From Magallana gigas (Eukaryota), in NCBI RefSeq assembly GCF_963853765.1, contig NC_088858.1, positions 56,544,001-56,608,000 on the forward strand: 64,000 bases of DNA, read 5' to 3'. Shown piece after piece: positions 25,241 through 32,676 of this stretch. The notes under the pieces were generated by a model, which was not told the origin of the DNA, did no database searches, and saw nothing but the letters and a program-made list of their open reading frames with translations. Each line of letters opens with the position of its first letter. Position 1 is the stretch's first letter. A program made the position numbers and the translations under genes.

Positions 25241-28200
25241 TCATCGTTTGTTGGGACAACAGCACTGGTGTTGGTGTGCGTTGTAGAAACATCCCAGGCA
25301 ATGGTGCATATCATGGACTTCAAAGCAGGTTTCTGTGAACGAGAAATTCACCGACATAATGGCGATCCCCTGAACTGAGGGTAAATATACAGTGCATTGT
25401 ACATTTATTTGAAGCGTCGAAAAAAAAAAAACCGGCCAACTATTTCTTTAAGATTATTTATGATATGGAAAAGGATGATATTGATTAAAAACCTAATAGA
25501 TATTTAATACATTCAAATCGCATGTCTAAAGCTACCTGATCAATTATTAACGACACTCAAAGTGGCTGAGCAGCCACCAACAGTAACACTTGTCGCTCAA
25601 AGTCAACAAACGAATCGGGCGACCCAATGTCAGAACTGGATCCGCGCGTGGTTGTCATGTCAATAATGGTTGATATGATTATTTTTAATGCTATTTAAAC
25701 ATTTGGTTGCAAATATTGAGTTGCAAGCGAAATAGAGAGTTTAGAATTCTTTGTATTGTAAACACAGCTGGAGTCTTGTTAATGTTTAAGAATGTCATAT
25801 GTTGATACTCAAGGTTTAAACAAATCTTGTTTTCTTTTGTTGATAATATTATCAATAAACACATTGAGGCTGTTTATCTTGATTGTCGCGAGTCATCATG
25901 TTCAAGATACTGTAAAAATTTTACCGTACATTATTATGGAATCAAGAGAAAATCTCGGGCTTTGTTTACACAAGAATGACTTTTGACCTCTGTATCTTGC
26001 TGTAATTTGACTTCTAACATTCAGATCTTGGTCAGTAATTCAAAATGCCTCACAAAATCAATCTATAAAAAAAAAATGATTAACTCAAATCCTGTATAGG
26101 TCCCTTTACGCCCCTGCGAATGTGTTCAGAATGTTTTCTTTATCGTTGCTAAGTATGTAATAAATTCAGAGGTGCTCGAATGAAAGTTCACAAGACTTCA
26201 CCGAGATTTGTTCAGTTCATGTGAAATTTCGAGCGGAAGTTTTAGTGTTCGGATAATATTCTCAAAATACGTAAGTGCTGGTCGATTTTCATATCATATT
26301 CTACTTTGATTTATGTTAAAAAATCAACATCTTTTAAGATGTATGTCTTATTTCACCATCTAGCGGTTTTTTAAATTAAACGTTGATATTCAGAACAGAG
26401 TTATCGTTCGTGTTCAACCACGTGTAGAGTGGTTGATAATATAAACATTGGGTTGCTTAATAAAATTAAAGCCATGCTGATGCTTGTGGTGTGCAATACC
26501 ATTTTTAAAAAAGAAATAATGGGTGTTTGTTTTGCATAAAATAGTGTATCGAACCATTTTCAAGGAACATTCTGCATAAAATAGTAGTTTGTTTCACTAT
26601 TGATGTTATTACTAGGTCAGGCGCGGATCGGAAATTAATTCTTAGGGGGGTCTCTACTACGTATGTTAATTGTCGCAACAGCAGAAAAAACTATTTTTTG
26701 TATTGTCACATTTATTTCTAGAACACATTTTATCCACCAATTGATGAAGATAAAGTTTAAAATCATAAACCTCTAGAATTTATATTTGACTACAAGTACC
26801 TAGATTCTCTAAAATAGACTATAAACACGAGGCACGATTTTAACTGCGAAACTGAAAGGGTCAAATAAAGCACGTGGTCTAAAATTTAAATGATAATAAC
26901 ATTTGCAGGGGTGTTTAATGGTATATACCGTAACAATAAAGCGCATGATTGCGTCCGTCATAACGGTATCTGCATTAAAGTCTGCAGAAAAGATACATAA
27001 CCCGACCCGTGTTAGCGGGTTATGTAAATTTTTCCTGCAATGATCGCTTCCTTCATAACCCGCATGAATCATAAAAAAAAAATAATTTTTTTGTTTATAT
27101 TAACGTTTTCTTTTAACTAATTAATAAATTGATTATGAAAAGTACATGTAGAAAAATCACTAAATTACTGTTAATGTACATACGTACGTTAGCTAAAAGA
27201 AACAGCCAAATCGTCTGCTGTGAGACTTTGAGTCTGACATCATCATGATTATTTCATGCAGTCCGTGATATTTCGTAGGTCTCTGTAGATTTAGACCAAT
27301 TGATAAAGAGGGCGTGTCAATTTCAGGGCCGGCACATCCACACGTTAAGGTAAGCCTTACACAGTGGCGTCGGAGGAAAATTGAAAGTGGGGGGGGGGGG
27401 GGGGCTAGACTAATCCTCAGAAATCTTAACAAGTAAAAAAAACCAAACTAATTCCCAAAATCATTAAAATCCTAATCCGGGGGGGGGGGGGGGGGGGAGA
27501 ATAAATTACCTGTGGGTCCAGAAAAAATTCTTACCTGTCAAAACAATTTTCCACCCAATTCATGAAAATCCGTGGGGGGGGGGGCTAGTAAACGTATGAC
27601 TCCAAATTCTCAATATTTCAATCAAATAATGTCTGCTGCGAGAAAAAGTGGGGGTGGGGTCGGGTGGGTGAACCCTCTGGCTAATGGTCTACATTTGCAA
27701 AAATTAGCCCCCCCCCCCCCCCCCCCCCCCCCCCGGTTCCGACGCCTATGTTACGTGATAAATAAACATCATTTCCATAATCACCACGTGTTAAAATTTT
27801 TGATTTTTCGAAACATAATAAAAACGGAGGAAGATATCATATCTGTAGCGACAGTTATTTTATTGGCTACGGCAATTACATTAATTAAAAAGAGGATAAG
27901 GGAATACAGGCGCAAGATAACATAAGGTATTTTTATACATGTTTTACATTGAAAAATTTGATTTATTTATGTACGTGATTCCATTAATTATTCAATACGT
28001 ACGTCAAAACAAAAAGAAAATTTATTATTAAATTTTGATTCCTTCGTAGTCAGTCAAATCATGATTAGATCATGATATAATATTGTTATATTGATTGATT
28101 TGAAAGCTATCGGGTATTATATGACATGTAGAAAGGTATACGCTGTTATATAGATAACTTAATGCATGTACGTGATGAGGAATTTTATCAAATAGATACG

Positions 28201-28941
28201 TGTTGTATAAATTATTTAATTCGTATGAACATTAGATAGTCACGTTATAATATAAATCAATTGAAAAGTACTCGGACAAGTATTATGTTAGAAACAGTAT
28301 GTGATGAGACATGTATTATATCAGATACAGAACGCGAAAAAATAATTATATATTTAATACGTACGTGATCCGTCCGTCGTGGATTCCTCCGAAAACAGGA
28401 AACCATGTAAAGCTACAAGAGTAAGCACAAAGTCAGTCAGCTGAACAACAACACGGGCTAAATACAGTAAACATACTTTTTTCGCGTGCGATAAATTTTT
28501 GCGAGGTTCGCGAGGGCTTTGTCCACGCGAATATATCCTGCCGCAAATAAGTCGCTGTGGTATAGTTGTTATAACAACACGGGTCTAAATAAGGCTTTGC
28601 CGCGAACATTAGGTGTCCCGAACCAGTCTATCGGTAGTACATCGCGAAATAAAGTGGTCGCCAATAAAAGTTGGTTTACAGAAAACAATAAGTGGGAATC
28701 AAAGAGTAAACACAAAGTTTGTCAACAAAACAACTACAGGCACTTAATAAACGATAAATGGGAAACATAAAGTATCTTCTTTAACGCAAATTAGATCATG
28801 TTAAGATATATATGCATCATCAACTATTCCTTAATACAGATATTTTAAACTCCTTTTTAGTTGTAACTTACATGCACCCTGTACAGAAACTGTCAGAACA
28901 CAGAAGATCAAAGCAAACGTCATAACCAATGGCTGCTTCAT
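25241..28941 (-). CDS. Small secreted cysteine-rich peptide B (83 aa, or 86 aa with microexon); unknown family
   Basis: Exons 28941-28872 (MKQPLVMTFALIFCVLTVSVQGA, signal-peptide-like, donor GTAAGT), 28412-28365 (SLHGFLFSEESTTDGS), optional 27192-27184, and 25374-25241 (LQGIAIMSVNFSFTETCFEVHDMHHCLGCFYNAHQHQCCCPNKR stop). All introns phase 1, GT-AG. C-terminus is clearly paralogous to the gene at 31795-32676. Confidence 0.8.
26109..26913. mobile_element. ~805-bp non-autonomous TIR element (C[A/G]CCCCTGCGAATG...CATTTGCAGGGGTG), copy 1
   Basis: Reverse-complement homologue of 40199-41012 over its full length; flanks share TTTA (4-bp duplication). Confidence 0.85.
27362..27750. mobile_element. 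MITE with poly-G/poly-C tracts
   Basis: Termini CAGTGGCGTCGGA... and ...TCCGACGCCTATG are imperfect inverted repeats; no clean TSD. Confidence 0.6.
28465..28681. mobile_element. Tc1/mariner-type MITE
   Basis: TA+CAGTAAACATACTTT...CGCG left end and CGCCAATAAAAGTTGGTTTACAG right end (imperfect TIR). Confidence 0.55.
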
Positions 28942-31708: not shown

Positions 31709-31794
31709 CCAAACTTCATTCATGCTGGCCATAACCGAATTTTCCGTTCACAAGAACCCAGTGAAATTTACAGAACCCAATACAACATTTCAGA

Positions 31795-32676
31795 ATGAAA
31801 TCCTGTTGTTTCTTCGTCTTGGTAGTGCTGGTCGGAGTGGCGTTTTCCGCCAGTAAGTTATTTTTGTTTATTATAGATATTTCTTTAAATCTTAAAAAAA
31901 AATTCTGCCTTAATTTCGTTTTTATTGAAAACAAATGCATAGGTTGGTAAAATTATATAAGTGAGGAAAAAAAAGCCAAATGATTTTTTGTTGTTGTGTT
32001 TCATCATTTTGAGATAAAAAGAAAACTGAATCACAAAATTTTAGTTAAAGCTATTGGAGGACTGTGTAGAGAATTATTGCAATTATTTAAATTGTAGCAA
32101 TCCAGCGAATTCCGCAACCAATCAACAAAGGAGTAGCCAAACAGATGGTTCGAGGTGTGTACAGCTACTATTGTCTCGATGTAATAATATTTTTCATGTT
32201 AATCGGTGAAACGTAGTATAAGTGATATTATTTTTTGTTTTTTTTAGAAGTACTAAATGATCTTGGCATGGACAAACCAGGCGATTTGAATCCAGAGGTC
32301 ACCACGCCAAAACCTGTCTGTAAGTCATTTATACTGATTCATTGTGTTTATCAACTCCAAATCTCTTATACTGATTCGTGATCATTCACCACGACAAATC
32401 TTTATACCGATTCGTGGTCATTCACCACGCCAAATCTTTTATTTTCGATTTGTGGTCATTCACCACGCCAAATCTGTTATACCGATTCGTGGTCATTTAC
32501 CACGCTAAATCTTTTTTACTGACTCGTCGTCATTCGGGTTTACGTTTTAGGACATAGCCAAACCACTTATTATTGTTCTTGTAGATTCCTGTAAGAGGGA
32601 GTACAACAGCTACCATTGTCAGGGCTGTTTCTATGACTACGTCCAGCATCAGTGCTGTTGTCCCGTCTATAAATAG
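31795..32676 (+). CDS. Small secreted cysteine-rich peptide A (92 aa); unknown family
   Basis: Exons 31795-31852 (MKSCCFFVLVVLVGVAFSA, signal-peptide-like), 32098-32154 (TIQRIPQPINKGVAKQMVR), 32248-32319 (EVLNDLGMDKPGDLNPEVTTPKPV), 32585-32676 (YSCKREYNSYHCQGCFYDYVQHQCCCPVYK stop). All introns phase 1, GT-AG. Confidence 0.85.
32296..32535 (+). repeat. ~36-bp intronic repeat copied from the exon end (CACCACGCCAAA core)
   Basis: The core occurs in exon 32248-32319 and about five more times in the following intron. Confidence 0.75.

Follow-up and report, generated by a model that had tools for sequence, protein, structure and literature searches.

The locus examined here, a 64,000-nucleotide stretch of the genome of the Pacific oyster, Magallana (Crassostrea) gigas (contig NC_088858.1, positions 56,544,001 to 56,608,000; hereafter, the window), raises the question of whether two small, divergently oriented reading frames with closely similar cysteine-rich ends are genuine genes and, if so, whether their products belong to any characterized family and how they might act. 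An initial annotation of this DNA had proposed a head-to-head pair of secreted peptide genes, which we term gene A (forward strand) and gene B (reverse strand). Splice modeling and comparison with other oyster genomes show that A and B are real spliced genes for small proteins, which are conserved and end in a constrained six-cysteine C-terminal domain (the core). On the same evidence, they are two old paralogues of an oyster-restricted family. As an overall explanation, to which we assign a probability of about 0.55, we propose that these paralogues encode secreted peptides whose disulfide-rich core recognizes a partner in the manner of a ligand. The last element, recognition of a conserved partner by a ligand-type peptide, is taken on its own a tentative proposal that falls somewhat short of even odds.

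Gene models and the shared six-cysteine core

A six-frame scan of the 64-kb window for the pattern C..C..C..CCC returned two matches only, and these are the cores of genes A and B. Both conform to the frame C-x8-C-x2-C-x8-CCC recognized by the initial annotation, and the two C-terminal peptides that it quoted are present exactly in the sequence, with positions 25241 and 32676 marking the outermost base of each stop codon. Fourteen of the 30 residues in the last exons are invariant between the two genes, including all six cysteines, and the motifs H-C-x-G-C-F-Y and Q-H-Q-C-C-C-P are common to both. At the DNA level, only a 53-nt stretch of the core can be aligned between A and B (77%, E 2e-5), and the linkers that precede it do not align.

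The splice model of gene A, built from the window sequence, spans positions 31795–32676 on the forward strand and comprises four exons (279 nt, 92 aa), while that of gene B spans 28941–25241 on the reverse strand and comprises three (210 nt, 69 aa; Table 1). All introns of both models are GT-AG, those of gene A with pyrimidine tracts, and all are of phase 1, as had been noted at the outset. The two genes are thus conventional in their TATA and GT-AG signals, with exons separated only by phase-1 introns, and in each the core occupies a last exon of its own.

Table 1. Positions in the window of the exons and flanking elements of genes A and B.
Feature	Position	Strand	Description
TATA box of gene A	31701–31708	+	94 nt upstream of the ATG; found by pattern scan
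Gene A exon 1	31795–31852	+	58 nt; start codon and signal-peptide-like segment; followed by a phase-1 intron; donor GTAAGT
Gene A exon 2	32098–32154	+	57 nt, phase 1-1; basic/polar linker
Gene A exon 3	32248–32319	+	72 nt, phase 1-1; acidic/polar linker
Gene A exon 4	32585–32676	+	Six-cysteine core C-x8-C-x2-C-x8-CCC-P and stop codon
AATAAA, likely polyadenylation signal of gene A	33047–33052	+	371 nt after the stop
Conserved upstream region of gene B (promoter and 5′ untranslated region)	28942–29346	−	74% identity over 432 nt to the upstream region of Crassostrea virginica LOC111127913
Gene B exon 1	28872–28941	−	70 nt; start codon and signal-peptide-like segment; followed by a phase-1 intron; donor GTAAGT
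Gene B exon 2	28365–28412	−	48 nt, phase 1-1; short acidic/polar linker
Gene B exon 3	25241–25332	−	Six-cysteine core and stop codon

The signal-peptide exon claimed for each gene agrees with the hydrophobic, signal-like N-termini of the products, as judged by hydrophobicity and the −3/−1 rule only: the best 10-residue Kyte-Doolittle mean is 3.5 for exon 1 of gene A and 2.97 for exon 1 of gene B. Across the four precursors now at hand (A and B from M. gigas and from C. virginica), the hydrophobic cores of the N-termini score 3.0–3.5 over 10 residues and small residues stand at plausible cleavage sites. A basic residue lies near the start of the protein in three of the four, C. virginica A being the one that lacks it.

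Between the signal-like segment and the core lies a poorly conserved linker, carried by two exons in gene A and one in gene B. The plural linker exons first proposed are therefore borne out for A but not for B. In gene B, at least one internal exon is needed because splicing exon 1 directly to the last exon creates a stop codon, and the direct splice from the GTAAGT donor was rejected on this ground. We also rejected a weaker GTGCAT donor, whose use would yield a 51-aa product without support from the C. virginica gene structure, and further candidate internal exons that were without any homology support. The exon retained ranks second by splice score among the phase-compatible candidates, the top-ranked one being a 24-nt stretch. 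Its beginning, L-x-G-F-L-F, aligns with exon 2 of isoform X1 of the C. virginica B gene LOC111127913 (P0009), and this homology supports a single linker exon, rather than several, in gene B.

The gene A model is colinear with two M. gigas proteins of 92 aa in UniProt, which fall into the same 90% cluster: K1S537 (P0005), named "Uncharacterized protein" and differing at one position, and A0A8W8HKT8 (P0001), named "Hepcidin" and differing at four. The N-termini of both entries are identical to the product of exon 1, the three split junction codons are intact, and every difference falls in the linker. Among the M. gigas copies of gene A there are five allelic differences, of which four fall in exon 3. 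Independent annotation thus arrived at the same splice model for gene A. Since the model matches these two entries, gene A is already annotated in public databases, and the term "unannotated" used initially for the pair holds only for the open reading frame (ORF) track of that scan; the orthologue of gene B, too, is present in RefSeq as LOC111127913. For gene B itself, the collections searched appear to contain no M. gigas annotation, with no M. gigas protein found for it among either 1.84 billion or 5.8 billion proteins.

Two introns carry repetitive sequence. Intron 2 of gene B measures 3.0 kb in the window against 1.2 kb in C. virginica, in part because of a homopolymer cluster at 27340–27760. 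This cluster contains poly-G tracts at 27389–27404, 27479–27497 and 27574–27583, which are faced by a 27-nt poly-C tract at 27708–27734 with imperfect inverted flanks; it may represent a foldback-type insertion or else a homopolymer stretch prone to misassembly. A 37-bp minisatellite (32328–32535; 5.6 copies, 79% matches) lies in intron 3 of gene A and has no counterpart in the C. virginica intron, which is much shorter.

Orthologues, synteny and selection

We built a profile from the two cores and searched it against 1.84 billion representative proteins, which yielded four sequences at E ≤ 0.001: the M. gigas A protein A0A8W8HKT8, C. virginica LOC111127913 isoform X2 (P0003), and two further entries (P0002 and P0004). 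Chance similarity of the cores is excluded because the profile matches independent oyster proteins with E values of 1.9e-13 (A0A8W8HKT8), 1.3e-12 and 5e-7. The repeat protein P0004 was set aside as spurious, having only a 7-residue stretch in common with the core. P0002 and its cluster were rejected as 160-aa proteins, being ORF calls on ~1-kb genomic Logan contigs that read through a TGA stop; P0002 was used only as an orthologous last exon. No Mytilus protein was recovered in this search. Extending the profile search to 5.8 billion proteins added only isoform X1 of the C. virginica B gene (71 aa), which features a signal-like N-terminus, a short linker and the core spacing C-x8-C-x2-C-x6-CCC. 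A scan of JGI metagenome contigs gave a single match (L005), antisense within a high-GC bacterial gene and without the CCC triplet, which was likewise discarded. Within the protein and metagenome collections searched, the family is so far found only in oysters.

The Logan contigs behind the misread entries (L001–L003) are genomic DNA of a related oyster and are 81% identical to window positions 25042–25852. In L001, the last exon of gene B differs at 7 of 92 nt, with five synonymous and two non-synonymous changes, and the acceptor, reading frame and TGA stop are kept. The six cysteines are invariant across A and B of M. gigas, A and B of C. virginica, and this Logan orthologue. The motif that is invariant across the family is H-C-x-G-C-F-Y ... 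Q-C-C-C-P, within a core of 27–29 residues.

In C. virginica, the pair lies on chromosome record CM130319.1 (locus L004). LOC111127913, the B gene, has three exons and two phase-1 introns; ~6 kb upstream of it, on the same strand, is an uncalled A-type gene, which we modeled with four exons, introns all of phase 1 and a product of 91 aa. The exon numbers and phases of the two orthologues are the same as those of the window genes and, together with the splice models, they sustain the claim of two small spliced genes on opposite strands of the window. Downstream of the peptide genes in L004 is a myosin-I gene, whose product matches the Myosin_head, Myosin_TH1 and SH3 models and which anchors the synteny of the peptide pair: the window carries, at 16393–20153 on the forward strand, the tail exons of a myosin-I-type gene with 78–87% DNA identity to the exons at L004 17599–21993.

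The window is colinear with L004 over these myosin exons (~16.4–20.15 kb), over gene B with its upstream block, and over an intergenic block at 30664–30910. The gene A segment with its promoter, extending from ~31321 to at least 33068 (the 3′ limit of its conservation with C. virginica) and corresponding to L004 3936–5452, is inverted relative to the B–myosin block, with one breakpoint between 30910 and 31321. In the window, the A and B start codons are 2.85 kb apart and transcription is divergent, whereas the C. virginica genes stand in tandem. The head-to-head arrangement reported at first is therefore true of the window but is not conserved, the layout being specific to one lineage. The A/B pair itself predates the Magallana/Crassostrea split.

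The tandem order in C. virginica, together with the presence of a separate conserved upstream block for each gene, also makes a shared bidirectional promoter unlikely. The TATA box of gene A lies inside a promoter block conserved with C. virginica (window 31551–31872 against L004 4193–4521, 69%), and an equivalent TATA is found upstream of the C. virginica A gene. For gene B, the upstream region and exon 1 match across window 29346–28932 and L004 9953–10381 at 74%, a block that takes in the alternative first exon of LOC111127913 isoform X2. This upstream exon (L004 10001–10045) starts the RefSeq isoform X2, which is without a signal peptide, and its equivalent in the window lies at ~29299–29346. 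Because that exon falls in the conserved block, gene B may possess an alternative upstream transcription start in M. gigas as well.

We then estimated substitution rates between the window and C. virginica by Nei–Gojobori counts. The cores of both genes show a dN of 0.10, with a dS of 1.14 in gene A and saturated synonymous sites in gene B. The linkers yielded a dN of 0.28 and dS of 1.02 for exon 2 of gene A, 0.66 and 0.59 for exon 3 of gene A, and 0.51 and 1.46 for gene B. When the paralogues A and B are compared with each other, pN is 0.33 and the synonymous sites have reached saturation. Together with the unalignable linkers of the paralogues, these counts confirm, by the measure of coding substitutions, the strong purifying selection on the core that had been suggested from its conservation alongside unrelated pro-regions. 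The constraint runs along much of the length of the core and is not confined to the cysteines. Exon 3 of gene A, on the other hand, evolves about neutrally between the two species, and its exon 2 is moderately conserved.

These data contradict the possibility that the two frames are chance ORFs or decayed pseudogenes without a product, to which we accord next to no credence: the frames, splice sites, phases and stops are unbroken and are preserved in two further oyster genomes, most core substitutions are synonymous, and annotation pipelines working independently arrived at our A model and at the B model of C. virginica.

Relation to known peptides and possible mode of action

To place the pair among known families, we compared both core exons, the two M. 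gigas A proteins and C. virginica isoform X2 with Pfam-A (hmmscan, E ≤ 10). Neither core exon, nor K1S537, nor isoform X2 gave any match, and none of the Hepcidin, defensin, macin, ShK and WAP models was matched. A0A8W8HKT8 returned MutL_C over its linker residues 18–50 (E 0.05, 13.7 bits against a cut-off of 25 bits), which we discounted as an off-target chance match. PDB sequence searches with the core profile, A0A8W8HKT8 and isoform X1 (E ≤ 10) gave only chance-level matches, with E above 0.4, and no hepcidin chain; centrin, haem oxygenase, ACE2 and a phlebovirus glycoprotein (E 0.49) were dismissed as such. A Foldseek search of the PDB with a predicted model of the core alone (pLDDT 69) had a best E of 6.8, to unrelated entries, and again no hepcidin; a PHD-type zinc finger (E 7.3, probability 0.04) was also at chance level. 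We left the Foldseek matches uninterpreted in view of the low confidence of the model, and the model of the full-length precursor (pLDDT 54) was of insufficient quality for use as a query.

With no cysteine-rich family matched in any of these searches, the suggestion of a possibly new family stands: the pair belongs to no characterized family and is new in that sense, although its general kind is well known. Like generic secreted cysteine-rich precursors, the precursors have an even number of conserved cysteines in a compact C-terminal domain. With CS-alpha-beta defensins, big defensins, macins, ShK and WAP proteins they have in common the general layout, a signal peptide (here putative) followed by a cysteine-rich domain, but the cysteine spacing, with its terminal CCC triplet, differs from all of these.

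The name "Hepcidin" carried by A0A8W8HKT8 calls for separate comment. To our knowledge, hepcidin occurs in vertebrates only, and its mature peptide is an eight-cysteine hairpin with four disulfides. Vertebrate hepcidin (PF06446) resembles the oyster proteins in having a similar-sized precursor with a signal peptide, putative in the oyster, a pro-region and a cysteine-rich C-terminal peptide on the last exon, and in a mature domain that is conserved rather than hypervariable; the oyster core is, moreover, predicted to be beta-rich. True orthology would find its support in this precursor layout and in the automatic name. It is opposed by the failure of the Pfam Hepcidin model to match the core exons, the M. 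gigas A proteins or C. virginica B isoform X2, by the absence of any hepcidin from the PDB and Foldseek results, and by the core itself, which is near-neutral, has six cysteines in the C-C-C-CCC frame in all four genes instead of eight, and is without a basic cleavage site before it: no R-x-x-R or dibasic pair precedes the first cysteine in any of the four precursors. We therefore regard orthology with vertebrate hepcidin as effectively refuted, and the UniProt name as a likely annotation artefact, as suggested by these sequence and model comparisons, that could propagate.

Two bivalve families offer closer points of comparison. Mytilus MgCRP-I, as reported, comprises bivalve-restricted short secreted peptides with six invariant cysteines, presumed to form three disulfides, and combines a conserved pre-pro region with a hypervariable, diversifying mature peptide (PMC4558851). 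The six invariant cysteines in a short secreted peptide are a generic feature that the oyster pair has in common with it and no proof of homology, and the pattern of conservation described there is the reverse of that seen here, where the core has the lowest dN and the linkers of both genes the higher values. The other is Cragi-CCCGS of C. gigas, described as oyster-specific secreted cysteine-rich peptides that take their name from a CCC-containing motif, with unknown function and no relatives reported elsewhere; they have 8 cysteines in 42 residues and are encoded by alternatively spliced transcripts of one gene (PMC8398477). By this description, the present pair differs in having 6 cysteines in 27–29 residues, two genes, and a proline after the CCC. 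The strings "GCFY" and "QCCCP" are absent from the text of the supplement to that report, in which the published sequences are given as figures (PMC8398477).

Could the peptides be effectors of host defense, that is, a secreted disulfide-stabilized core that acts on microbes as do defensins, big defensins and vertebrate hepcidin? Invertebrate defense peptides usually show this layout of signal peptide, linker and a cysteine-rich C-terminal domain with an exon to itself, the family is lineage-restricted, and the database label of A0A8W8HKT8 would point the same way. However, the core is near neutral, with a net charge of 0 to +1 and a pI of 6.9–7.6, and it is under strong purifying selection in two stable copies that are retained 1:1 between genera, unlike the diversifying pattern reported for mussel CRP-I (PMC4558851). 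The Pfam models of the defense families, including that of hepcidin, were unmatched, and we found no report of an oyster hepcidin in the literature. The antimicrobial or toxin reading first put forward is thus not favored, given a core that is barely charged and a mature domain that is conserved instead of hypervariable; we consider an antimicrobial role unlikely, while reckoning with it as a serious competitor.

We instead prefer a regulatory, ligand-type peptide over an antimicrobial peptide of the cationic, membrane-active type or a rapidly evolving toxin, because a constrained mature domain is joined to a drifting linker, because the net charge is close to zero, and because just two copies exist and have been retained 1:1 since Magallana and Crassostrea separated. 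Under this explanation, the signal peptide would be removed on entry into the endoplasmic reticulum, and the core is predicted to form a compact module, rich in beta structure and stabilized by three disulfides. The peptide would then be secreted, whether or not the linker is removed, and the C-terminal K-R conserved in the B-type proteins could be trimmed. Finally, the core would recognize a conserved partner, which might be a receptor or some other protein, or possibly a metal ion.

A further alternative is that of a secreted metal-binding peptide, in which the invariant histidine, the CxxC and the CCC coordinate Zn or Cu in place of an all-disulfide arrangement. Oysters accumulate Zn and Cu, the H-C-x-G-C element and the CCC triplet are invariant, and the core of M. 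gigas B has 5 histidines in 29 residues. The histidine content nevertheless varies from 2 to 5, with one residue invariant and a second kept in three of the four genes, so a His-rich core, as initially described, does not qualify as a trait of the family. Cysteines of secretory-pathway proteins are normally oxidized to disulfides, which also speaks against metal coordination, and no metal-binding family was matched in Pfam or the PDB, the zinc finger found by Foldseek being at chance level. A role primarily in metal binding thus appears quite unlikely.

Less probable again is a structural or matrix component (of the shell matrix, mucus or egg coat) with a cysteine-rich end used for cross-linking. 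The products are small, putatively secreted and rich in cysteine and tyrosine, and are limited to a shelled bivalve lineage, as such a role might lead one to expect, but the precursors contain no stretch of repeats or low complexity such as matrix proteins typically have, the constraint on the very small domain extends beyond its cysteine positions, and we found no proteomic report of it in the literature. We hold this explanation to be improbable.

Several considerations weigh against the explanation of an oyster-restricted, disulfide-rich ligand. The absence of the family outside oysters is weak evidence, small spliced genes often being unannotated, and we found no mention in the literature of these accessions, of the core motif or of the genes. 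Signal peptides were called by the two simple rules given above. The AlphaFold2 models, computed from 5–6 sequences, are weak (mean pLDDT 54 with the whole A precursor and 69 with just the core), and the three short strands and a turn predicted for the core are of low confidence; because of this, the three-disulfide fold and the pairing of the cysteines stay putative. The conserved CxxC, CCC and histidine could instead form a metal site. Lastly, the choice of a ligand is a preference only, as strong conservation of the mature domain is also found in some host-defense peptides.

Should the ligand explanation hold, the core could represent a new C-C-C-CCC disulfide framework in an oyster-specific hormone or regulatory ligand, perhaps a convergent hepcidin-type analogue that ties metal handling or another pathway to a secreted signal, with the paralogues addressing related partners; this extension is speculative and, in our estimate, rather unlikely. 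Oysters are of major importance in aquaculture and serve as models in the study of invertebrate immunity, metal accumulation and neuroendocrinology, and their peptide repertoires are incomplete because small spliced genes escape annotation. The present family is without a Pfam model, a solved structure or a literature, and correcting the "Hepcidin" name, for which we find no support, is of practical value. Should the core prove to act as a ligand or in metal handling, and its disulfide framework to be new, the pair would bring a lineage-specific component of signaling or homeostasis and a new mini-protein scaffold; if it is merely another orphan secreted peptide, the gain would be a modest improvement in annotation.

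Other features of the window

The window is eukaryotic in character, AT-rich (~33–35% GC) and free of runs of N. Downstream of gene A, on the forward strand, are ORFs with a RING finger (45263–45598, E 2.6e-7) and a TRAF/meprin MATH domain (55790–56278, E 2.8e-49), which probably belong to one TRAF-like gene spanning ~11 kb. A Pfam match to YmaF at 22243–22689 was rejected as an artefact of repetitive translation in a tandem-repeat region; the surrounding 22–24 kb features tandem repeats and a strong AT skew. At 62571–63829, long overlapping ORFs of up to 380 aa are found on both strands, with strong GC/AT skew and many weak low-complexity Pfam matches, and this segment is in all likelihood an array of simple repeats and not a gene. 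A GC-skew anomaly resembling that of the latter segment is seen at 10–14 kb.

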